IMG/VR virus record: IMGVR_UViG_3300009093_000034
Span: 124,001-188,000 of that record
Reading direction: 5' to 3' (one strand)
DNA: 64,000 nt
This document shows positions 1,228-25,569 of this stretch, piece by piece. The notes beneath the pieces are model-generated. The model made no database searches. It was not told the origin of the DNA and was given only the letters and a program-made list of their open reading frames with translations. Positions within the stretch are counted from its first letter, which is position 1. Every line of letters begins with the position of its first letter. Both the position numbers and the translations under genes were made by a program.

Positions 1228-2474
1228 CCATAGATCTTGATGCTATTCAACGAAGGCTCAGACAAAATCAAGATAGGTTGGAGTTTCCTTACGATAGCAT
1301 TCATCCATGGAATCAGGCTTACTCGATCATAGATGAACTCAAAGTTGAACTAGACAAGCAGTTAAAAGGACAGCAAGACTTCTTCAAACGACTAAAACCG
1401 AAGATGTATCTTTGGGTGGTGATTGGAGAGAACGATGATCACAAGAAGTTCATTTCTTACTATTCCAAGATCCTTCCTAGAGATACCGAAGCCATCTTGT
1501 TGTTTGACCATGTGAGTGAGGCAACTAAGAAACAGTTTCTAAAAGCGTGGCCTAACTCTCTTATCTTGAACGTTCCTGATTTTAATTATCACTATGATAA
1601 GGTCAGGTTCACTTTTTTCTCGTCTCTCTATCCTAAGTTAGGTGAGGACGTTTGGAACTTGTTTCTAGATCTAGATGAGTTCTTACCTTTGTTCTCAGAT
1701 CACTATGACATTGAAGGTCTTTGCGAGTTGTTGGAGAGAAAGAAGATCACCCAACTCACTTCGATCATGCTAGATGTTTGGGAGCTCCAAAAATGTGGAC
1801 AAAGAGATTTGTACTTTGATTCCTTTGGAGACAAAGGTCATCAGATTGCCAGAGAGAACTATTACTTGAATCATCGATACGACCCTGTGGTTCAGTACGA
1901 GAAAGACGTCTTGTTCGGGGTAGATCTCAACAAAGGCGAGAACTTCTTCATCAAAGAGAACGGATTTAGAGTAATGAACTTTCAACATCTAAGAGGAAAG
2001 TTGCTTGGTTACAATGAACCAAATAGCGCTCAAAAGGTTGTGTTGGTCAAACCTACTTCAAAATACTCGTATTCAGGTTCTAGCCATGAACCTCATTATG
2101 CTTACCAATCCACTAGTGAGATCCTTACTAGGTATCCTTTGATCCATATGAAGTTCATCAGAGAGACTCACTTTGGAAAGATGAAAGAATACTCTGACAA
2201 AGAGACTAAGATCGTAGATTCTCAGAAAGAGATCATGGGTTGGAGAAACGATCCTCTCTATAAGAAGCCAAAGAAGTTGTTATATGAGTCTGGAATTGGA
2301 CCTTACCAACTTCTTGGAGACCACGATGATGATAAGGTATTTGAGATGTTCGGGGATAGGTTGACTCTTCTTTCTGGCGTGTTCACCAAGAACTTCAAGT
2401 TCAACTCTCTTAAGTGTTTCTTTGGTCAAACTGGACCCATGTTTCCAACACTTTTTGTTGATCCTTTACTCTAA
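1224..2474 (+). CDS. Glycosyltransferase family 2-like protein, paralog B
   Basis: WNLFLDLDEFL motif; ATGA coupling; ends VDPLL. Confidence 0.65.
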   Translation: MTIDLDAIQRRLRQNQDRLEFPYDSIHPWNQAYSIIDELKVELDKQLKGQQDFFKRLKPKMYLWVVIGENDDHKKFISYYSKILPRDTEAILLFDHVSEATKKQFLKAWPNSLILNVPDFNYHYDKVRFTFFSSLYPKLGEDVWNLFLDLDEFLPLFSDHYDIEGLCELLERKKITQLTSIMLDVWELQKCGQRDLYFDSFGDKGHQIARENYYLNHRYDPVVQYEKDVLFGVDLNKGENFFIKENGFRVMNFQHLRGKLLGYNEPNSAQKVVLVKPTSKYSYSGSSHEPHYAYQSTSEILTRYPLIHMKFIRETHFGKMKEYSDKETKIVDSQKEIMGWRNDPLYKKPKKLLYESGIGPYQLLGDHDDDKVFEMFGDRLTLLSGVFTKNFKFNSLKCFFGQTGPMFPTLFVDPLL

Positions 2475-2601
2475 GACTAAGATATTGATCTTCGAGATCA
2501 AACATGTATGATGGTTTCCCCTAGGAGACTAGGGTGTTTCTTAGGGGAAACCCTCTCTTTTTATAAAGATTTTTTCAAAAAGTTTCTCTTTTTTCCTGAG
2601 A

Positions 2602-2614
2602 CTGAGATATTGTA
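2602..2614 (+). promoter_or_regulatory. Class A promoter-like motif CTGAGATATTGTA (representative copy)
   Basis: Near-identical copies at 3850, 14944, 20569, 26141, 31378, 31918, 34695, 37683, 39335 and 43071, all on + just upstream of gene or RNA starts. Confidence 0.75.
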
Positions 2615-2725
2615 ACCGTCAGCACTAACTGTGCAAAGTTCTTTCAGAATAGAAGTAAAATTAAAAATATATGTTCCGACCGTTGGTTGGAACTTCCGAA
2701 AATCTATTCTGTAAAGAGGTTCTTT

Positions 2726-3772
2726 ATGAACAAGCTTTTTACGATTCTTTCTGTGGTTCTCCTGGCTGCTTTTGCCAGTTGTACCATGCCTGGTTCGTCC
2801 ACCAAGACTTACCAGAAGATCCCTGTGATCGCCGGAGCTAAGGCCCCCACCCACACTTCTCGTAACATCTCTCTTGGAGATGGAGAAGCCGTAGCTCCTG
2901 AGCTGTTCTCGATCTCACCAGTAGTGACTGGTTGGGTTGGAAGCTCCACTCCCGTCACCGATGGTGAAGTCTTGACTTACACTTACTTTGGTGCTACGTT
3001 GAAGATGGTCGTTCACATGGACGTCCCGGTTGTAGGTGCCATCACCTATACTACTGACACTTTGGATGTCAGCGGAAATCCCACAGGTGTCTATGATACT
3101 ACTGTTGGGGCAGGCTTTGATGCTAACGCGTCCTTCTCCGAAGATGGTACCACCTACCCTGGTTCTGTAGGAGTAACCACGCTGAATAGCGTGTGGAATG
3201 CTTCTAACACCAGTCATGTGACTGCTGTTCTTAACGTGGGAGGAACTAGTTTCTCAATCGATCAGAAACTTTACATGAGTTTCTGGAACACGTCGACAAG
3301 TCCTGCTAAGCTGTATTGGGTGTACTACATCCACATGGTTATTCCTTCAGGAACCATCGATGGTAACGGCGGATTTACTGCGGCTGGTGCTGAATACGTT
3401 GATGAGAATGCTTACAACGTCAGCACTGAACCTGGAGTTTCTGGTCCGTTTGATTCTAGCTTGCTTTCCGCTCAGCTTTCCTACTCGAATAGTGTCTTCC
3501 TTATTAAGGCTACTCCTAATAAGGTTGGTGTACTCTTCAAGTACGGAACTCAGACTCCGGTTTCGCCTCCTACTTCCTCCATCATTACAGATGGTGTAGC
3601 TGGAGATCCTACGAGTGCTACCTTGGCATCTGCTGCTCCTACCTATACTCCTACAGATTCCTCTTGGGGATCTGGAACCTTGTACTACTACAGCACTCCG
3701 TATAAGTGGATCAAGGGTAGTTCGGATGGTCAGCCTGGTACCGATCAGGATAAGTTCAACGGTCTTCAGTAA
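2726..3772 (+). CDS. Ser/Thr-rich lipoprotein
   Basis: MNKLFTILSVVLLAAFASC signal peptide plus lipobox Cys; RBS AAGAGG. Confidence 0.75.
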   Translation: MNKLFTILSVVLLAAFASCTMPGSSTKTYQKIPVIAGAKAPTHTSRNISLGDGEAVAPELFSISPVVTGWVGSSTPVTDGEVLTYTYFGATLKMVVHMDVPVVGAITYTTDTLDVSGNPTGVYDTTVGAGFDANASFSEDGTTYPGSVGVTTLNSVWNASNTSHVTAVLNVGGTSFSIDQKLYMSFWNTSTSPAKLYWVYYIHMVIPSGTIDGNGGFTAAGAEYVDENAYNVSTEPGVSGPFDSSLLSAQLSYSNSVFLIKATPNKVGVLFKYGTQTPVSPPTSSIITDGVAGDPTSATLASAAPTYTPTDSSWGSGTLYYYSTPYKWIKGSSDGQPGTDQDKFNGLQ

Positions 3773-4027: not shown

Positions 4028-4101
4028 GCTACGTTAGCTCATGTAGGTAGAGCAGCTGATTTGTAACCAGCAGGCGAAGGGTGCAAGTCCTTTACGTAGC
4101 A
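4028..4101 (+). tRNA. tRNA-Thr(TGT)
   Basis: Cloverleaf, acceptor GCTACGT/ACGTAGC, loop TT-TGT-AA; no CCA. Confidence 0.85.
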
Positions 4102-4460: not shown

Positions 4461-4463
4461 CAT

Positions 4464-4548
4464 GGATAGGTACGTTAGCGGCTATACAGGCGGTCTTGAA
4501 AACCGTTCGCTCCGCAAGGAGCCGTGAGTTCGAGTCTCACCCTATCCG
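4464..4548 (+). tRNA. tRNA-Ser(TGA)
   Basis: GGATAGG/CCTATCC, loop CT-TGA-AA, long variable arm, G73. Confidence 0.9.
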
Positions 4549-4551
4549 GAA

Positions 4552-7805: not shown

Positions 7806-8273
7806 ATGGAACAACTATCAGAATCCTTAGGCGTCGGCTTCTACAGAGTAGGTCGAATCACCATCCCAGTAAGAATGGCATCACATGCCACAGATCGCCT
7901 GGAACAAAGGTTTCCTGGTGTTGAGATCTCCCAAGTTAAAGAGATATTGAATAAGGGTGTTCAGCAGATCGCCCAACCAAGTGGTCACGTTGAACTTGGG
8001 CAATATTTGATCATCGATCAAAATGATGGTGTGATGTTGCCTATCAAGATTCAGAAGAATGATCGACCTGGGTATGAGAGACAAACCATGGGATTCATCC
8101 CAACGGTTATGGATTGGAAACTTCAATCAGACTCTGATTACCCTGAAGATCTCTTAGACAAGTACCACTTCTTGAAGAAGATCTACGTAGAAAGTGCTTC
8201 ACGATGGGAGGTTCCCAATCTGTCGAAGACAGGAACCTTTAATGGAGAACCTTGTACCATCATCTACGTCTAA
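7806..8273 (+). CDS. Hypothetical protein
   Basis: 155-aa ORF in operon. Confidence 0.6.
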   Translation: MEQLSESLGVGFYRVGRITIPVRMASHATDRLEQRFPGVEISQVKEILNKGVQQIAQPSGHVELGQYLIIDQNDGVMLPIKIQKNDRPGYERQTMGFIPTVMDWKLQSDSDYPEDLLDKYHFLKKIYVESASRWEVPNLSKTGTFNGEPCTIIYV

Positions 8274-8284
8274 AGGAATTTGAC

Positions 8285-9196
8285 ATGAGTGACACCTTAA
8301 CACTAGAGATCCTAGTCGGTGCCCCTGCTTCTGGTAAGTCCACTTACGCAGAAGAAAAACTAAAGACTGAGAAGAACTGGGTGAGGATCAACAAAGATAC
8401 CTTGAGAACCCAACTTCGTCAGGCCAAGAAAGATTTTACCGAGCGTGAGCTCAACAGTATTGAAGACATTCACATTGAGGCTGCGCTCAAAGCGGGATCA
8501 AGCGTGATCGTTGACGACACCAACTTGAATCCTTTCCATGTCAAAGATCGTCTACGACCTTTGGGACGGAAGTACGGAGCCAGAGTTCTTGTTAACACTG
8601 AGTTTCTTAAGGTTCCTGTGGAAGAACTGATTTCTCGAGACAAGAGACGAAAGAACTCTGTTGGTGCAGATGTCATCAACGACATGGTCGACAGGTTCTA
8701 TGCTACTTGGCTTAGGAACGCCACTCCTTGGTTGGATACAATCAAGGAAAACAAAGAGAAGACTCCTGTTTATCTCTTTGACTTGGACGGTACCTTGGCC
8801 TTCGCTACAGAGCGAGGTTGGTACGAGGACAAGTTGGCAGGAACGGACACTCCTAACATTCCTGTCATGGGAATCTTGAAGAGTCTTCTTCGCTCTGTGA
8901 GAGTCATCTTTGTTTCTGGTCGAGAAGATAAGTCTTGGCAAGTCACGTGGGATTGGCTCATTAAGCACAGTGAAGTAGGTTTTGACACGTGGGATTCTGG
9001 TCAACCTATGCTCTTGATGAGAAAGACGGGTGACGAGCGTTCTGATGACGTAGTCAAGGCTGAGATCTATAACGAGCAGATCAAGGACAACTTCAATGTT
9101 CTTGGGATCTTCGATGATCGACCTAAGGTCGTTCGAATGTGGAAGTCTCTTGGCTTGTTTGTGTTCGATTGTTACCAATCTGACCAAGAGTTCTAA
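8285..9196 (+). CDS. pseT: Polynucleotide 5'-kinase/3'-phosphatase (T4 PseT-like)
   Basis: P-loop GAPASGKST, RINKDTLR, HAD motif FDLDGT, FDDRPKVV. Confidence 0.93.
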   Translation: MSDTLTLEILVGAPASGKSTYAEEKLKTEKNWVRINKDTLRTQLRQAKKDFTERELNSIEDIHIEAALKAGSSVIVDDTNLNPFHVKDRLRPLGRKYGARVLVNTEFLKVPVEELISRDKRRKNSVGADVINDMVDRFYATWLRNATPWLDTIKENKEKTPVYLFDLDGTLAFATERGWYEDKLAGTDTPNIPVMGILKSLLRSVRVIFVSGREDKSWQVTWDWLIKHSEVGFDTWDSGQPMLLMRKTGDERSDDVVKAEIYNEQIKDNFNVLGIFDDRPKVVRMWKSLGLFVFDCYQSDQEF

Positions 9197-9602: not shown

Positions 9603-9721
9603 AAAAGCCCCCGATCAGGGATCGAAGATGTCCTACGCCTCTCGAAGAAGCGCACCAATGGATCTGGAACGTAGGTCAGCGGTTGTCTCACCCCAACAGG
9701 ATATTTGAGAAAGGGTGGTTT

Positions 9722-9806
9722 GGATGAGTATGTTAGCGGCAATACGACCTGTTTCGAAAGCAGGCTCTTCCGAAAGGAAGCGTGAGTTCGAGTCTCACCT
9801 CATCCG
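9722..9806 (+). tRNA. tRNA-Ser(CGA)
   Basis: Loop TT-CGA-AA, long variable arm, G73. Confidence 0.9.
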
Positions 9807-9823
9807 TCCTTTACTAATTGTTC

Positions 9824-11330: not shown

Positions 11331-11402
11331 GCGATAGTAGTTCAACGGTGGAACACCTCATTGCCAATGAGGAGGCCGCGGGATCATCACCCGCCTATCG
11401 CT
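11331..11402 (+). tRNA. tRNA-Gly(GCC), atypical T loop ATCATCA
   Basis: GCGATAG/CTATCGC, loop TT-GCC-AA, U73. Confidence 0.85.
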
Positions 11403-11416
11403 TTGTCGTTAGGAAA

Positions 11417-11830
11417 ATGCAACACCTTACAAACGTTCCCTCACACGGTTCTCTTAAAGAGCTCGCCAAAGCTGTTGGCGATTTACGTTACGATGCTCTA
11501 GAGGACTTTCTCTACGAACTCCAGCAAAAACTTTATAATGACTCACGCGCTGACCAACTACGAGGCCGTTCAAAGTTGTCTCAAAGTTTGGCTAACTCTG
11601 CCGATATGCTTGCGTACGTGAGAACTCATGTCTCCACAGCTTGGAAGATCTCAGCTCCCTTTATGAATGAAAAAGTCTCTAAGAAAGAAAGAGAGACAGA
11701 CCAACTTTTTGAAAAGTTGGGTGAGCTTCTTGAACAGGCTAAAGAAGTCCAACTTTCAGAGTCCTTCTGGAAGAAGCTCTGGAAAGATAGAAGGAAAGAG
11801 GCAAAAGAACATGCCAGAAAACATCTCTAA
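11417..11830 (+). CDS. Hypothetical protein
   Basis: ATG after AGGA; the longer track start lies inside tRNA-Gly. Confidence 0.6.
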   Translation: MQHLTNVPSHGSLKELAKAVGDLRYDALEDFLYELQQKLYNDSRADQLRGRSKLSQSLANSADMLAYVRTHVSTAWKISAPFMNEKVSKKERETDQLFEKLGELLEQAKEVQLSESFWKKLWKDRRKEAKEHARKHL

Positions 11831-12032
11831 AGATCTGTTGGTCATAGCTAAGGCTTGTAGATTGGCCAACGAGTTTGACTCAGTTCCAAGTCTTGAAGAC
11901 TACGAGGAATCTTCATCGTATGATCCTCAAGACGAACTAGCCAAGTTAGCTATTGAGAAGTACCATTGGTACAGTTACTCGGACATGCCTGGTATATTAT
12001 TACATTACATCGAGACAAACATCCATGAGTGA
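11811..12032 (+). CDS. Hypothetical protein
   Basis: Overlap-coupled ORF. Confidence 0.55.
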   Translation: MPENISKDLLVIAKACRLANEFDSVPSLEDYEESSSYDPQDELAKLAIEKYHWYSYSDMPGILLHYIETNIHE

Positions 12033-12261
12033 CGAAATTAAAGTGATCAAGAAGATCGAACCAAACAGAACAACACCTCCTAGGTTTTGGAACAAGATCG
12101 CTGCGTCTGTGGCTTTAACAGTGATTGGCGTGATCGAGTTGATCTTCTCAACAAAGTTGGGTTGGTTGGCATTGGTATTAGGTTTGACTAACATCGCAGT
12201 TGCCTTAGTGGTTTTAACCTTGGGAATACTGGAGAATAATAGAAATGTCAAGAAGCACTGA
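12025..12261 (+). CDS. Small two-TM membrane protein
   Basis: Two hydrophobic segments. Confidence 0.6.
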   Translation: MSDEIKVIKKIEPNRTTPPRFWNKIAASVALTVIGVIELIFSTKLGWLALVLGLTNIAVALVVLTLGILENNRNVKKH

Positions 12262-12903: not shown

Positions 12904-13923
12904 ATGGATATCAAGATCATCGGTTGTGGCGGAGCTTTCTCCGAAGACGGTTATTTATTTCACCAGTCTTTTTTGATCAGTGAAGGTGGAGAGAACCTTC
13001 TATTTGATATGGGCAAGGACGTTTGGCCTTGGGCTATGAAGAAGCAAGGCTTGGGTGTTAATGACATCCATCAGGTCTTGATCACTCACCGTCATGACGA
13101 TCACATCGGTTCATTGGGAACTTTTGGTCTCAAGAGATACAATTGGTTTGAGAAACCTATTCACTGGAAAGACTCAAAGAGAGATTACGCTCCTACCCTG
13201 ATTTACTCCATGGACCTTCAAGATGGTCTTTGGGAGTCTCTTAGAGGTAACCTTGAAACCAATGAAGGTTTCGTAGGTTCTTTGGAAACGTTCTTCAAGT
13301 TGAAGCCTATCAAGGAAAACGAGCACTGGGATTTCCACGGTTGGGATCTTCAATTGGTTCGCCAAGTCCATGTCATGGCCGGAAACTCTTTGATGAGTAC
13401 TCATGGTTTGTTCCTGGAGAAGGGTGATCACAGAATCTTCCTGACCGGTGACTGTCAGTTCTTCCAGCCCAAACAGGTTATCTGGTTCTACAACCGAGCT
13501 ACCTTCATCATCACAGACAACGAAACTGTAGGATCCAACTTCCTTTTCCAAGAAGGAACTGAAGTCTACGACGTAACCATCGATGGAAAGAAGGTTACCA
13601 AGCTTTGGCCTACTCTTCTTGAAGACCCTGATGGAATGAAGGTCATGGAACTAATGGCCCAGGATTTCACTCCCTACAAGTGGGAAGTCTTGAAATTCTC
13701 TTCAGGTGTTCACTCGACCTATCCTGAATTGGCAGGTTATCCTTCCGCCAATGCTACAAGGCTTGCTCCTGAGATCAAGAAAAAGATGCACCTTTCTCAC
13801 TATGGTGACCACGTTCCTCAGAACAAGGATGCCTTTGGCAATGATCTTGACTGGGAAGCTCAAGCTAAGAAAGACGGCTTTGCTGGATTCGTCAAGCCTG
13901 GACAGGTCTTTCATTTCGAGTAA
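12904..13923 (+). CDS. MBL-fold metallohydrolase, Apyc1-like cyclic-nucleotide phosphodiesterase (alternative: RNase Z-like)
   Basis: IGCGGAFS, ITHRHDDHIG (HxHxDH), TGDCQF, SGVH, HYGD. Confidence 0.8.
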   Translation: MDIKIIGCGGAFSEDGYLFHQSFLISEGGENLLFDMGKDVWPWAMKKQGLGVNDIHQVLITHRHDDHIGSLGTFGLKRYNWFEKPIHWKDSKRDYAPTLIYSMDLQDGLWESLRGNLETNEGFVGSLETFFKLKPIKENEHWDFHGWDLQLVRQVHVMAGNSLMSTHGLFLEKGDHRIFLTGDCQFFQPKQVIWFYNRATFIITDNETVGSNFLFQEGTEVYDVTIDGKKVTKLWPTLLEDPDGMKVMELMAQDFTPYKWEVLKFSSGVHSTYPELAGYPSANATRLAPEIKKKMHLSHYGDHVPQNKDAFGNDLDWEAQAKKDGFAGFVKPGQVFHFE

Positions 13924-16110: not shown

Positions 16111-16183
16111 GCTCCTGTGGTGCAAGGTAGACACGCCATCCTCAGAAGATGGAGACAGTGTGGGGTCGAACCCACCAGGAGTA
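16111..16183 (+). tRNA. tRNA-Leu(CAG) with short variable region
   Basis: CCATC-CT-CAG-AA-GATGG; 7-nt variable region; T loop GTCGAAC. Confidence 0.75.
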
Positions 16184-22748: not shown

Positions 22749-22753
22749 TCTTT

Positions 22754-22842
22754 TGGGGTGCTTTTGGGAGGGAAACACGGTTCGAGTCCGTGGATGCTGG
22801 GTGCGGCGACGGCCACCGGGGGTTCGATTCCCCTCACCTCAA
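22754..22842 (+). tRNA. Atypical tRNA (Ser-CGA-like) whose anticodon loop is T-loop-like
   Basis: TGGGGTG/CACCTCA, CACGG-TTCGAGT-CCGTG, 25-nt variable arm, T arm. Confidence 0.5.
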
Positions 22843-22930
22843 TACAAAATACTCTAGTTTTCTTACCTGTTAAATCTTAAACTAATCTCCGTTAGGAGAA
22901 AAATTAGGAATTACCAGGAGGTAATGATAT

Positions 22931-23926
22931 ATGCAAGATACTAGAGGCAACAAGAATCCTCTCGTAGGCTGGATCACACTAGGAGTAATTGCTCTCCTTG
23001 CTGTAACAGTCGTGTTTTCTTCTTTCTCTGTGATTGGTTCTACCGATCGTGGTGTAAAGATCCGATTGGGTGCTATTCAAACTGACCAAGGAGTTCTTCC
23101 TTCAGGTCTCGTCTGGAAGATCCCTTTCATCGAAGACGTAAGAACGATTTCGATGTTGCCTCAAGAGATCGATGTCTCGATCAAGGTCGATGATGATGGT
23201 GCAATCACTAAGGATAACCAGACCATCGGCATGGGATTGACAGTGTTCTATACTTACAAGCCTGAAGGGGTCGTTCAGATCCTGAAAGATTTGTCAGTAG
23301 AAAAAGTTGCCAGCTTGGTACAGTCAGGTATGGTTCAGGACGTTAAGCAGGTTCATGGTGGGTACTCGATCTACGATATCGCCCAGAACCAAGCAAAGCT
23401 CCAACAGGAATCCATGGCTTCACTTAAGCAGACGATGTCCGCCTACCCTATCAACGTGACTGAGCTTCGTATCAAGAACTACGATTGGGGAAAAGAGTTT
23501 GACGAGCAGATCAAGACTACGATGTCTAAGGCCCAACAGGTTCTTCAGGCAAAGCAAGACTTGGATCGAAGAACTATCGAACTCCAGAAAGACGTTGCTG
23601 AATCAAGTGCTAAGAAGCAACAAACTGTGTTGGACGCAGAAGCTGCTGCTCAACAGGTTACCATCGCTGCTACTGCAGAGAAGGACGCCGCAAGAGCTAG
23701 AGCTGAAGCTAAGACCATTGAGGGTGAGGCCATACGAAAGTACAACGCCTCTATCGCCCAGAACCTTGATGTTCAACTTGCTTTGAAGAAGTTGGATATC
23801 GAAGCGACCAAAGCTGCTAGATGGGACGGACATAACGTTCCTACGAACAACTACGGTCCAATTCCTGTCCAAACCAACGCTGGCCTTGCTGGTGTGAAAG
23901 TGGACGACGTTTCGAGTCAGAAGTAA
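22931..23926 (+). CDS. SPFH/band-7 (prohibitin-like) membrane protein
   Basis: N-terminal TM, GVKIRLGAI..GLVWKIPFIEDV, C-terminal coiled coil. Confidence 0.88.
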   Translation: MQDTRGNKNPLVGWITLGVIALLAVTVVFSSFSVIGSTDRGVKIRLGAIQTDQGVLPSGLVWKIPFIEDVRTISMLPQEIDVSIKVDDDGAITKDNQTIGMGLTVFYTYKPEGVVQILKDLSVEKVASLVQSGMVQDVKQVHGGYSIYDIAQNQAKLQQESMASLKQTMSAYPINVTELRIKNYDWGKEFDEQIKTTMSKAQQVLQAKQDLDRRTIELQKDVAESSAKKQQTVLDAEAAAQQVTIAATAEKDAARARAEAKTIEGEAIRKYNASIAQNLDVQLALKKLDIEATKAARWDGHNVPTNNYGPIPVQTNAGLAGVKVDDVSSQK

Positions 23927-23966
23927 GAGTTTGGGGGGCTTCGGCCCCCAAATTCAAATTCAACAT

Positions 23967-24129
23967 GGAGTCCGAACCCCAACAAATCAGAGCAAGGGTG
24001 AAGGATCGTTGACCTTATCGTGGAACGTAACGGTGAACAGGGCTTCCCAGGCTGGCCAGTAATGGGAATACAACTAACGTAACTAAGTAAGCGCACGAGG
24101 CGTGTGGGTGCAACTCCCACTGGACTCCC
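23967..24129 (+). ncRNA. tRNA-shelled RNA (8/5 acceptor-T geometry) with ~130-nt insertion
   Basis: GGAGTCCG/TGGACTCC plus T arm GTGGG-TGCAACT-CCCAC. Confidence 0.6.
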
Positions 24130-24157
24130 TTTTATACTAAAATGTAGTAGGTAATTC

Positions 24158-24625
24158 ATGGATCATCCTTACGGCTTCTATATCACAGAAGAAAATGAGA
24201 TATTAAGCTTTGATGAGGAAGACTACAAGTTTCCCATCTCCAGAGTAGACAAAATGTCTCACCCTGGAAGAATCTATACAGGAGAGAACATGCACAGTGC
24301 TGTTTATTGCCCTTCGTGTAATCGAAGGCACACCAAGGCCGATGCTCGTCGAGCCCGCGGAACGATTTTTGTTCCTTGCTCTTGCGGAAGTCACTTCGAC
24401 TTCTACAATCAGAACCTGATCAACACGGTGCTTGCCGTCGAGTTGATGCAGCTGGCTATGGACACGAGTCCTTTCACGGATTTCTCGACTCCTAGCTTCG
24501 ACCCCAGTCCCAGCTACGATTCTTCGCCGAGCTATGACTCGTCACCGAGTTTCGATAGCTCTCCCAGCTTTGATTCGAGTCCTTCGTTCGACTCGAGTTC
24601 GAGCTTCGATTCCAGTTCTTTTTGA
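24158..24625 (+). CDS. Zn-finger-like protein with C-terminal PS(Y/F)DSS hexapeptide repeats
   Basis: CPSC..CSCG; 6-7 repeats encoded by varied codons. Confidence 0.7.
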   Translation: MDHPYGFYITEENEILSFDEEDYKFPISRVDKMSHPGRIYTGENMHSAVYCPSCNRRHTKADARRARGTIFVPCSCGSHFDFYNQNLINTVLAVELMQLAMDTSPFTDFSTPSFDPSPSYDSSPSYDSSPSFDSSPSFDSSPSFDSSSSFDSSSF

Positions 24626-24630
24626 TCAAT

Positions 24631-24880
24631 AAGACTTAGTTCGCCCTGTCGCTGGAGCCTGCAGGTCAGTGCCTCCAGAGGAAGTTCGCGGCGCCAAAAC
24701 CTACCGTGGGAGACCTAATCCGTCGTTATCACCACGTAAGGCGCAACCTAAACAGCTTGAGGGTGTCGGTTTCCCTTTGAGAGCGGGTTAGGGCAGCCAG
24801 AGAAGGCCATGGACACGAAAGTGTCTGTGAGATAAATGACGATGGGTAGAAACAGAACCGCGGCTATGAGACTAAGTCTT
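24631..24880 (+). ncRNA. rnpB: RNase P RNA (compact bacterial type)
   Basis: P1 AAGACTTAGT/ACTAAGTCTT, P3 CTGGAG/CTCCAG, CR-I GAGGAAGTTCGCGGC, GCGCAAC, P18 GACAC-GAAA-GTGTC, AGATAAATGA, CR-V AAACAGAACCGCGGCTA. Confidence 0.85.
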
Positions 24881-24898
24881 TCTTTTAAGGAAAAGAAA

Positions 24899-25228
24899 AT
24901 GAAATTGTTTGCTATCTTAGCTTTTGCTTTGGCATTGGTGTCGTGCTCTCCTGACAATGATCTGTCTCACGCCACGTATCCTGTTCGAGTTCTTTCAGTG
25001 TTCACTAACACCACAGAAGAAGTCGGATTCAACGGTACCAAGTTTACCAAAACAAACGGTTTTTCTACAGTGATCTATGTGGATGCCACTGGACGATCTT
25101 TCACTATCCAGGACTTTGGCATCCCTCAAGTGACCCCTGGTCAGCAGATCGAACTTCCTAAGGCCGAAAATCAACTTGGCCCAGAACTTCCTCCCCCTGC
25201 CAGTCCTGTTCCTACGAGTCAACCATGA
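24899..25228 (+). CDS. Lipoprotein
   Basis: MKLFAILAFALALVSC lipobox. Confidence 0.75.
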   Translation: MKLFAILAFALALVSCSPDNDLSHATYPVRVLSVFTNTTEEVGFNGTKFTKTNGFSTVIYVDATGRSFTIQDFGIPQVTPGQQIELPKAENQLGPELPPPASPVPTSQP

Positions 25229-25569
25229 CTCCAAGGAGAAACTGCGTAGCCGTCATCCAGGTGATGATGGACATGATCCCAAAAGATCAAACTGAGTTTC
25301 TCAAGGCTCTTCAATGGAACCTTGAAGACGCAGCTTACAAACCTCCTGAAGAGACTCTTCAATGGGAACGAACTGCGTACACTCTTAGCAAGTACATACC
25401 AATCCCTGAACAAGATTGGGAGCTTCAGGTGGTGAGCATCTTTACCACTGAACCTGTCGAAGCTATCAAAGCTAAGGTAGCCGAGTTCTTGAAACTCCAA
25501 CAACAAGGTTGGAAAGAACTCGAAGATGACATCGGAGACAAAATTTCTGATGCAAAGTTACTATTGTAA
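25225..25569 (+). CDS. Hypothetical protein
   Basis: ATGA-coupled. Confidence 0.65.
   Translation: MTPRRNCVAVIQVMMDMIPKDQTEFLKALQWNLEDAAYKPPEETLQWERTAYTLSKYIPIPEQDWELQVVSIFTTEPVEAIKAKVAEFLKLQQQGWKELEDDIGDKISDAKLLL

Follow-up and report, generated by a model that had tools for sequence, protein, structure and literature searches.

A compact RNase P RNA homologue of 250 nt encoded by a huge bacteriophage, and a family of more than 100 phage relatives missed by standard annotation

The DNA examined in the present study is a window of 64,000 nt, corresponding to positions 124,001 to 188,000 of the 305,833-bp IMG/VR contig Ga0105240_10000031 (IMGVR_UViG_3300009093_000034). Using ARAGORN, 20 phage tRNA genes were observed between 4028 and 35849, all on the + strand and including a suppressor with a CUA anticodon, and only 2 of these 20 genes end in CCA. 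A CCA-adding tRNA nucleotidyltransferase, a second phage-encoded tRNA-maturation function, is encoded at 39354-40742 (+), as supported by matches to Pfam PolyA_pol (1e-36) with RNA-binding and HD domains, to the PHROG tRNA nucleotidyltransferase (6e-71) and to the NCBIfam CCA tRNA nucleotidyltransferase (2e-66). The window also encodes an SNF2-type helicase matching phage families and an SPFH protein. Within the 274-nt gap between the ORF at 24158-24625, which lies on the + strand, and the ORF at 24900-25228, a helix search bounded by complementary ends around the conserved core revealed an element of 250 nt at 24631-24880 (+), closed by an 11-bp helix. The initial annotation had described exactly this interval as a compact phage RNase P RNA, and that observation is confirmed herein. 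The motifs named in that annotation are all present: GAGGAA at 24678-24683, GTTCGCGG at 24684-24691, AACCGCGG at 24856-24863, GCGCAAC at 24741-24747 and TTGAGGGTG at 24757-24765.

At Rfam gathering thresholds, only tRNAs are reported in the window. However, a permissive cmscan of 24500-25000 aligned RF00010 (RNaseP_bact_a) to 24632-24883 (+), end to end over model positions 1-367, at 39.6 bits and an E-value of 5e-11 for that 501-nt stretch, which is still roughly 1e-8 when scaled to the whole window. The gathering score of RF00010 is 100 bits, and E. coli rnpB scores 318.6 bits on the same model, so routine annotation misses the element. The absence of any RNase P model hit had been set out in advance as an outcome that would count against the annotation; a significant hit was obtained, although below the gathering score. 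In this alignment, 140 model positions of the specificity domain are matched to only 40 nt. The best-scoring member of the Rfam clan is bacterial type A. The match is far more than chance, as the same architecture recurs, with strong covariation, in more than 100 distinct sequences.

The family was assembled in several steps. First, conserved blocks retrieved four close homologues (designated L001, L003, L004 and L005). Second, a pattern for J18/2 plus the P4 3' strand retrieved 94 viral loci, most of them with a P4-to-P4 span of only 148-230 nt. Third, a secondary structure was derived by hand from the first five sequences, and a single-sequence covariance model (R1) built from this structure and searched against all loci gave 72 matches, nearly all full-length, at E-values from 1e-5 to 1e-49, comprising 64 distinct sequences. 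Fourth, a second viral scan, anchored only on the 5' half, added 60 matches with 45 new distinct sequences of 188-294 nt. Thus, more than 130 matches and more than 100 distinct relatives (188-353 nt) were obtained in viral and metagenome loci, and at least 26 of the contigs carrying a match are 200 kb or longer. None of 16 relatives tested, including variants of 320-355 nt, reaches any Rfam RNase P gathering score, and R1 gives no real hit on E. coli rnpB, showing that the model is specific to the compact form. The only similar deposited DNA is the curated, complete 735-kb huge phage LR756501, which belongs to the Mahaphage clade and is predicted to infect Bacteroidetes (PMC7162821). A blastn search of two family members against 50,697 deposited phage records hit only LR756501 and LR756503, and a megablast search with 12 kb of the window returned nothing.

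The secondary structure was then tested in the two independently retrieved sets. In the first alignment, 95.8% of 3,548 cells form standard pairs, compared with 63.0% in column shuffles and 33-47% when the partners were slid by 1-3 columns, and 62 of 68 pairs show changes on both sides. In the second set, the corresponding values are 95.0%, 61.2% and 61 of 68 pairs; across both sets, 0 of 500 shuffles reach the observed value, and sliding the partners gives 32-47%. Both alignments are fitted to the nested helices, which inflates their pairing percentages, and the cleanest evidence is therefore provided by the P4 and P6 pseudoknots, which were left out of the model. P4 is 98.1% and 95.3% paired in the two sets, with double changes in 4-5 pairs, and P6 is 94.1% and 89.2% paired, with covariation in all five pairs. 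Two earlier MAFFT alignments misaligned P1, P3 and the variable hairpins and were not used for pair counts. The helices P1, P2, P3, P5 and P15 occur in the canonical order of type A RNAs, and all covary, with 83-100% of cells paired.

Along the element, the P1 5' strand (24631-24641) pairs with 24870-24880, all 11 pairs showing changes on both sides and 93% and 92% of cells paired in the two sets. The P2 5' strand (24644-24650) pairs with 24838-24846 through 4 bp, a 2-nt bulge and 3 bp, the inner 4 bp being 99-100% paired and covarying. The P3 hairpin (24652-24678) is 96-99% paired, with double changes in 5-6 pairs. CR-I (GAGGAA) and the P4 5' strand occupy 24678-24691, with the bulged U at 24686; A49-A53, U56, C57 and G60 are at least 97% invariant. 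The P5 5' strand (24692-24695) pairs with 24740-24743, with 99% of cells paired and all 4 pairs covarying. The P6 5' strand (AAACC, 24697-24701) pairs with GGUUU at 24768-24772 in the P17 loop, joining the strand just 3' of P5 to that loop exactly as in type A RNAs. J5/15 (GCAA, 24743-24746) includes A115 and A116, which are at least 97% invariant, and GCAA occurs in 38 of the 45 sequences of the second set. The P15-P16-P17 arm (24747-24792) comprises P15 (24747-24749 with 24790-24792), P16 (24755-24757 with 24782-24784) and P17 (24760-24763 with 24773-24776), these helices being 90-100% paired with covariation in all pairs. The L15 GGU motif, which pairs with the tRNA 3'-CCA, lies at 24786-24788 within GGGUU at 24785-24789; G157 is at least 97% invariant, and 43 of 45 independently retrieved sequences carry GGU at this position. 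J18/2 (24830-24838) reads AGAUAAAUG, and in sequences retrieved without using this motif it reads AGAnnAAUG, including the E. coli form AGAUGAAUG. J2/4 (ACAGAA) and the P4 3' strand (CR-V) lie at 24852-24865, and ACAGAA is conserved in the set retrieved from the 5' half only. GAGGAA, the bulged U and the C after it, GCAA, GGU and ACAGAA are invariant or nearly so in sequences retrieved without selection for them.

In contrast, the specificity domain is largely lost. Only 44 nt separate the two P5 strands (family median 44, range 40-159), whereas the corresponding stretch of E. coli rnpB runs to well over 150 nt in the alignment. The remaining segment (24705-24736) consists of a 5-bp P7-like stem (24705-24709 with 24732-24736), a small P10-like hairpin of variable length (24712-24724) and a conserved asymmetric internal loop, with GA on one side and GUUnnnA on the other, at 24710-24711 and 24725-24731. 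G79, A81, G82, G95, A101 and C102 are at least 97% invariant, and both stems covary. P8, P9 and P11-P14 are absent, together with the conserved J11/12 and J12/13 regions that read the tRNA T-loop. An extra hairpin between P15 and P18 (24796-24807), at the position occupied by P15.1 in type B RNAs, covaries where present and occurs in roughly half the family. P18 (24811-24826), with a GAAA tetraloop at 24817-24820, also covaries, and the module is absent in about half the family. The loop is GNRA in 20 of 30 sequences that have the module even though its usual receptor, P8, is missing, and these observations do not settle whether the loop docks as in type A RNAs. Several alternative readings were rejected. 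The conserved hairpin loop CCUAAUCC was first read as pairing with GGGUUAGG, but GGGUU is the L15 GGU motif and the next three bases form P15, which covaries. A CUU/GAG helix below the P7-like stem was replaced by the P6 pseudoknot, which covaries in all five pairs. A kink-turn in the conserved internal loop was rejected because the required tandem G·A arrangement is lacking; a single T-loop-like U-N-N-N-A reading is possible, although it was not tested.

The interpretation of the initial annotation, namely a compact phage RNase P RNA of roughly 250 nt with a reduced specificity domain, is supported by the end-to-end RF00010 alignment, by covariation in every catalytic-domain helix and by the phage and tRNA-array context, but several details require correction. 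First, the reduction had been placed between GCGCAAC and TTGAGGGTG, whereas GCGCAA is the P5 3' strand plus J5/15 and TTGAGGGTG is the 5' side of P16/P17, both within the catalytic domain; the actual reduction lies upstream, between the two P5 strands (24696-24739). Second, the P4 regarded as a variant reflects ordinary covariation, as the P4 strands align without gaps to E. coli rnpB with the same register of 3 bp, a bulged U and 5 bp. Third, P12 had been noted as not obvious, but more than P12 is missing. Fourth, of the two functions suggested, titration of host RnpA is disfavoured, because substrate-binding and catalytic nucleotides that a protein decoy would not need are invariant, while the processing of non-canonical substrates remains possible and was not tested.

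The genomic context was examined across 68 distinct copies. Of these, 45 have same-strand tRNA genes within 5 kb, 17 have a tRNA starting within 20 nt downstream of the P1 3' end, typically at 4-6 nt, and 8 have one ending within 20 nt upstream. None of the 511 tRNA genes in these loci lies on the opposite strand. The copy in the window lies 1.8 kb and 1.2 kb (1.1-1.8 kb) from its nearest tRNAs and does not abut one, and a promoter and terminator scan of 23900-25300 found nothing convincing flanking it. A tblastx comparison of the flanks of the relatives with the window found only the RNA itself, indicating that there is no conserved protein neighbour. No RnpA gene was found: no RNR-type motif was present in any ORF of the window, which covers 64 kb of the 306-kb contig, no tblastn hit was obtained in 1.68 Mb of phage DNA around these genes or in LR756501, and hits in other phage records look like host DNA. 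The suggestion that unusual phage tRNAs need a relaxed enzyme is not supported, as 17 of 20 tRNAs in the window and 818 of 902 (91%) in the loci have a canonical GTTCRA T-loop, although the cellular baseline of 8 tRNAs was too small to use.

Comparison with known systems places the RNA by descent within bacterial type A RNase P RNA, although it falls short of the family as curated on two defining features, the gathering score and the specificity domain. It shares with E. coli M1 RNA the order of catalytic-domain elements and the strings GAGGAA, GCAA, GGGU, AGAUnAAUG and ACAGAA, including the type A-specific combination of the P6 pseudoknot with P16/P17, but is 250 nt (family 188-353) rather than 377 nt, carries the extra hairpin between P15 and P18 and is encoded by phages inside tRNA arrays. 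The engineered E. coli catalytic-domain RNA (Eco CP RPR; Mao et al. 2018, PMC5839562) likewise lacks the specificity domain, is experimentally active, depends on a P6-like pairing for efficient cleavage and does not need P18 once the specificity domain is gone. The natural family follows this pattern exactly, always keeping P6 and losing P18 in about half, but that RNA is a laboratory construct, whereas the phage family is natural and evolving and keeps a conserved stem and internal loop at the former junction with the specificity domain. The archaeal type T RNA of Thermoproteaceae (Chan et al. 2012, PMC3579882) also keeps the catalytic domain, lacks most of the specificity domain, ends P10 in a small loop and was missed by the existing Rfam model; however, it is cellular, works with archaeal proteins and has an archaeal-type core with a 3-bp P2, a shortened P15 and a 2-nt P5/P15 linker, whereas the phage RNA has a P2 of roughly 7 bp (4+3 in the window), a 3-nt CAA linker and P6/P16/P17 of bacterial type A. 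This analogous reduction looks convergent and is not a sign of membership. The diverged RNase P RNAs of CPR bacteria and Mycoplasma fermentans (Lui et al. 2021, PMC8172020) lack P12-P14 and P18 and were also found only below Rfam thresholds, but they are single-copy cellular genes that keep P7-P11; two-thirds of the CPR forms lack the CCA-binding motif and many lack P16/P17, whereas the phage family keeps GGU, P16, P17 and P6, loses nearly the whole specificity domain and sits in phage tRNA arrays. At 188-250 nt, the phage RNAs are shorter than the 276-nt M. fermentans RNA (Siegel et al. 1996). The theta (HDV-like) ribozymes next to phage tRNAs (Kienbeck et al. 2024, PMC10879173) are also phage-encoded and proposed to act in tRNA maturation, but are small self-cleaving ribozymes acting in cis on 3' trailers, whereas the present RNA is a homologue of the trans-acting RNase P for 5' leaders; that report explicitly treats 5' processing as the task of the ubiquitous host RNase P. 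To date, no phage- or virus-encoded RNase P RNA was found in full-text literature searches or in the huge-phage, jumbo-phage and viral structured-RNA papers, subscription-only articles not being covered, and as far as we can tell this would be the first from viruses.

Herein, we propose that 24631-24880 encodes the catalytic RNA subunit of a phage-borne RNase P, derived from bacterial type A RNase P RNA, in which the complete catalytic domain is kept and the specificity domain of roughly 160 nt is replaced by one short stem of roughly 30 nt with a conserved internal loop. In this view, the RNA would be transcribed together with the phage tRNA genes, fold into the catalytic core, probably recruit the RnpA protein of the host and cleave the 5' leaders from the many phage pre-tRNAs. 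Many copies would be co-transcribed with tRNAs and released by tRNA processing, and where a tRNA gene follows within 4-6 nt, the same cleavage would also form the 3' end of the RNA itself. With the CCA-adding enzyme, the RNA would form a tRNA-maturation kit supporting the phage tRNA pool, in which most tRNA genes of the window lack an encoded CCA. The homology, the structure, the purifying selection on catalytic and substrate-binding nucleotides and the phage and tRNA-array context are demonstrated by the present analysis, whereas transcription, catalytic activity, the use of host RnpA and the benefit to the phage are inferred. Neither cleavage of pre-tRNA nor binding of RnpA was measured here, and no biochemical or expression data exist. 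Several observations also weigh against this proposal, including the low Rfam score, the lowered efficiency of engineered RNAs without the specificity domain (PMC5839562), the lack of a detected phage RnpA, so that any protein partner is assumed to come from the host, the distance of the window copy from its nearest tRNAs, the absence of a convincing promoter or terminator and the conservation of L15 GGU although few tRNA genes in the window encode CCA. Despite these points, we consider an active ribozyme trimming phage pre-tRNA 5' leaders the most likely function, with fairly good confidence.

Other explanations are less likely. An altered-specificity ribozyme, whose main targets would be tRNA-like or hairpin structures in phage polycistronic transcripts, other structured phage RNAs or host RNAs, is unlikely but possible, since the domain that reads the tRNA elbow is gone, engineered catalytic-domain RNAs cleave simple hairpin-loop model substrates (PMC5839562), the window copy is not adjacent to a tRNA and relatives share loci with other large structured RNAs, such as the GOLLD RNA in one locus (L073). 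However, the association is overwhelmingly with tRNA arrays, the CCA-binding GGU is conserved, the mostly canonical phage tRNAs are the obvious substrates and a conserved internal loop persists where the specificity domain used to be. A catalytically inert decoy that sequesters host RnpA or pre-tRNAs, shutting down or redirecting host tRNA maturation, is more doubtful. No phage RnpA was found, so the RNA would compete for the host protein; the regions that bind RnpA in bacterial RNAs (P2-P4 and J18/2) are retained; and one phage (L040) has a second copy lacking GAGGAA, which could be inert. Nevertheless, a decoy has no need to hold the bulged U, GCAA, GGU and the P6 pseudoknot invariant across more than 100 diverged sequences, and the phage needs tRNA processing for its own 20 or more tRNAs. 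A cellular origin, in which the RNA belongs to a small-genome organism such as a CPR bacterium and the contigs are mis-assigned, is very unlikely, although reduced RNase P RNAs have been described in CPR bacteria (PMC8172020). A pattern specific to the compact form, scanned over one genome for each of 185,579 species, gave 107 loci, of which R1 confirmed only 7, all on MAG contigs and none from an isolate. Six of these contigs are 0.5-13 kb long, and five of the six carry tRNA genes on the same strand as the RNA. The closest match (L107, 160.8 bits), in a Roizmanbacteria bin, lies on a 3-kb contig with 13 same-strand, redundant tRNAs, a phage-style array, and the seventh (L198) lies on a 425,361-bp contig binned as a Pacearchaeota archaeon, of the same length as an IMG/VR phage contig. 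The homologue in LR756501 and the conservation of the CCA-binding motif, which most described CPR forms lack, also contradict a cellular origin. A decaying fragment of captured host rnpB, suggested by the low Rfam score and the large internal deletion, is effectively refuted by the compensatory changes in every helix and the invariant core nucleotides of more than 100 diverged copies, a signature of purifying selection.

A further reading, which we regard as possible but tentative, is that huge phages encode a fully functional minimal RNase P ribozyme of only 188-250 nt, smaller than any cellular bacterial RNase P RNA we know of, in which the conserved stem and internal loop of roughly 30 nt would be a new, minimal substitute for the specificity domain. 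This RNA would make phage tRNA 5' maturation independent of host rnpB, for example during host shut-off or under a defence that targets tRNA maturation, and would define a new structural type alongside types A, B, M and T. The family is invisible at Rfam gathering thresholds and has therefore probably gone unannotated in phage genomes, such that a dedicated model would be needed, and it also flags mis-binned phage contigs in cellular MAGs. Compact trans-acting RNase P ribozymes of about 200 nt may also be useful as small scaffolds for guide-sequence-directed RNA cleavage. With regard to ribozyme structure, evolution would have supplied over 100 natural versions of the experiment with the catalytic domain only, showing which elements are indispensable (P4, P6, P15-17 and L15) and which are not (P18 and nearly the whole specificity domain). 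RNase P RNA is regarded as a hallmark cellular gene, and the 5' processing of phage tRNAs is assumed to be left to the host; a widespread viral RNase P RNA would change this view and extend the list of translation-related functions that huge phages carry, alongside the tRNAs and the CCA-adding enzyme observed herein.

Several features of the tRNA complement in the window were revealed in addition to the compact RNase P RNA. First, three of the 20 tRNAs, Thr-tgt at window 4028-4101 (+), Gly-gcc at 11331-11402 (+) and Leu-cag at 16111-16183 (+), lack the canonical GTTCRA T-loop. Second, two tRNA-Ser genes with the same CGA anticodon were observed at window 9721-9809 (+) and 22753-22843 (+), and these genes were reported only by ARAGORN; the Rfam tRNA model at gathering thresholds lists neither these two genes nor the tRNA-Ser(tga) at 4463-4549. 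Third, a CCA-adding tRNA nucleotidyltransferase with a PolyA_pol head, RNA-binding and HD domains is encoded at window 39354-40742 (+), consistent with the observation that only 2 of the 20 tRNA genes in the window end in CCA. In addition, a metallo-beta-lactamase-fold protein is encoded at window 12904-13923 (+), the best matches of which are the anti-Pycsar protein Apyc1 (PDB 7u2r, 1e-11), although the match to the Pfam Apyc1 family was below its cutoff, and a weak match to the N-terminus of RNase Z was also obtained. This protein could be a counter-defence nuclease or a tRNA 3'-processing enzyme. The ORF immediately upstream of the RNA, at window 24158-24625 (+), has a Cys-rich middle part and ends in about eight tandem SPSFDSS/SPSYDSS repeats, and no Pfam match was obtained for it.

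Variation was also observed among the loci carrying relatives of this RNA. In one phage contig (locus L073), a GOLLD RNA scoring 201 bits, above its gathering score, sits in the tRNA array at 7888-8305 (+), and the same contig also carries a larger RNase P-like RNA near 11759-12103. In another phage contig of 488 kb (locus L040), two copies were observed about 300 nt apart, at 1883-2064 (-) and 2372-2621 (-). The second copy, at 1883-2064, is 182 nt, scores 34.5 bits and lacks the GAGGAA motif, and thus may be a degenerate or regulatory paralogue. Moreover, in one subfamily, comprising the sequences from loci L082, L051, L090, L099, L054 and L040, the extra hairpin between P15 and P18 has a conserved loop, AUUAGCA or AUUAGUA, suggesting a specific tertiary or protein contact.

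Two of the matches were obtained in assemblies assigned to cellular organisms. A 425,361-bp contig (L198, JBBACR010000001.1) in a metagenome-assembled genome (MAG) labelled "Pacearchaeota archaeon" carries the phage RNA together with a tRNA array and is equal in size to IMG/VR contig 3300035208_004923, whereas a 3-kb contig with 13 tRNAs (L107, JAAXWV010000224.1) was found in a Roizmanbacteria MAG. Both contigs look like phage DNA that has been binned into cellular genomes. Finally, a tRNA with a CUA anticodon, i.e. an amber suppressor, which was labelled "Pyl" by ARAGORN, occurs in this phage at window 35775-35849 (+) and in two relatives that also carry the compact RNase P RNA (locus L016 at 1739-1810 and locus L036 at 3246-3318), and this observation hints at TAG reassignment in part of the genome.
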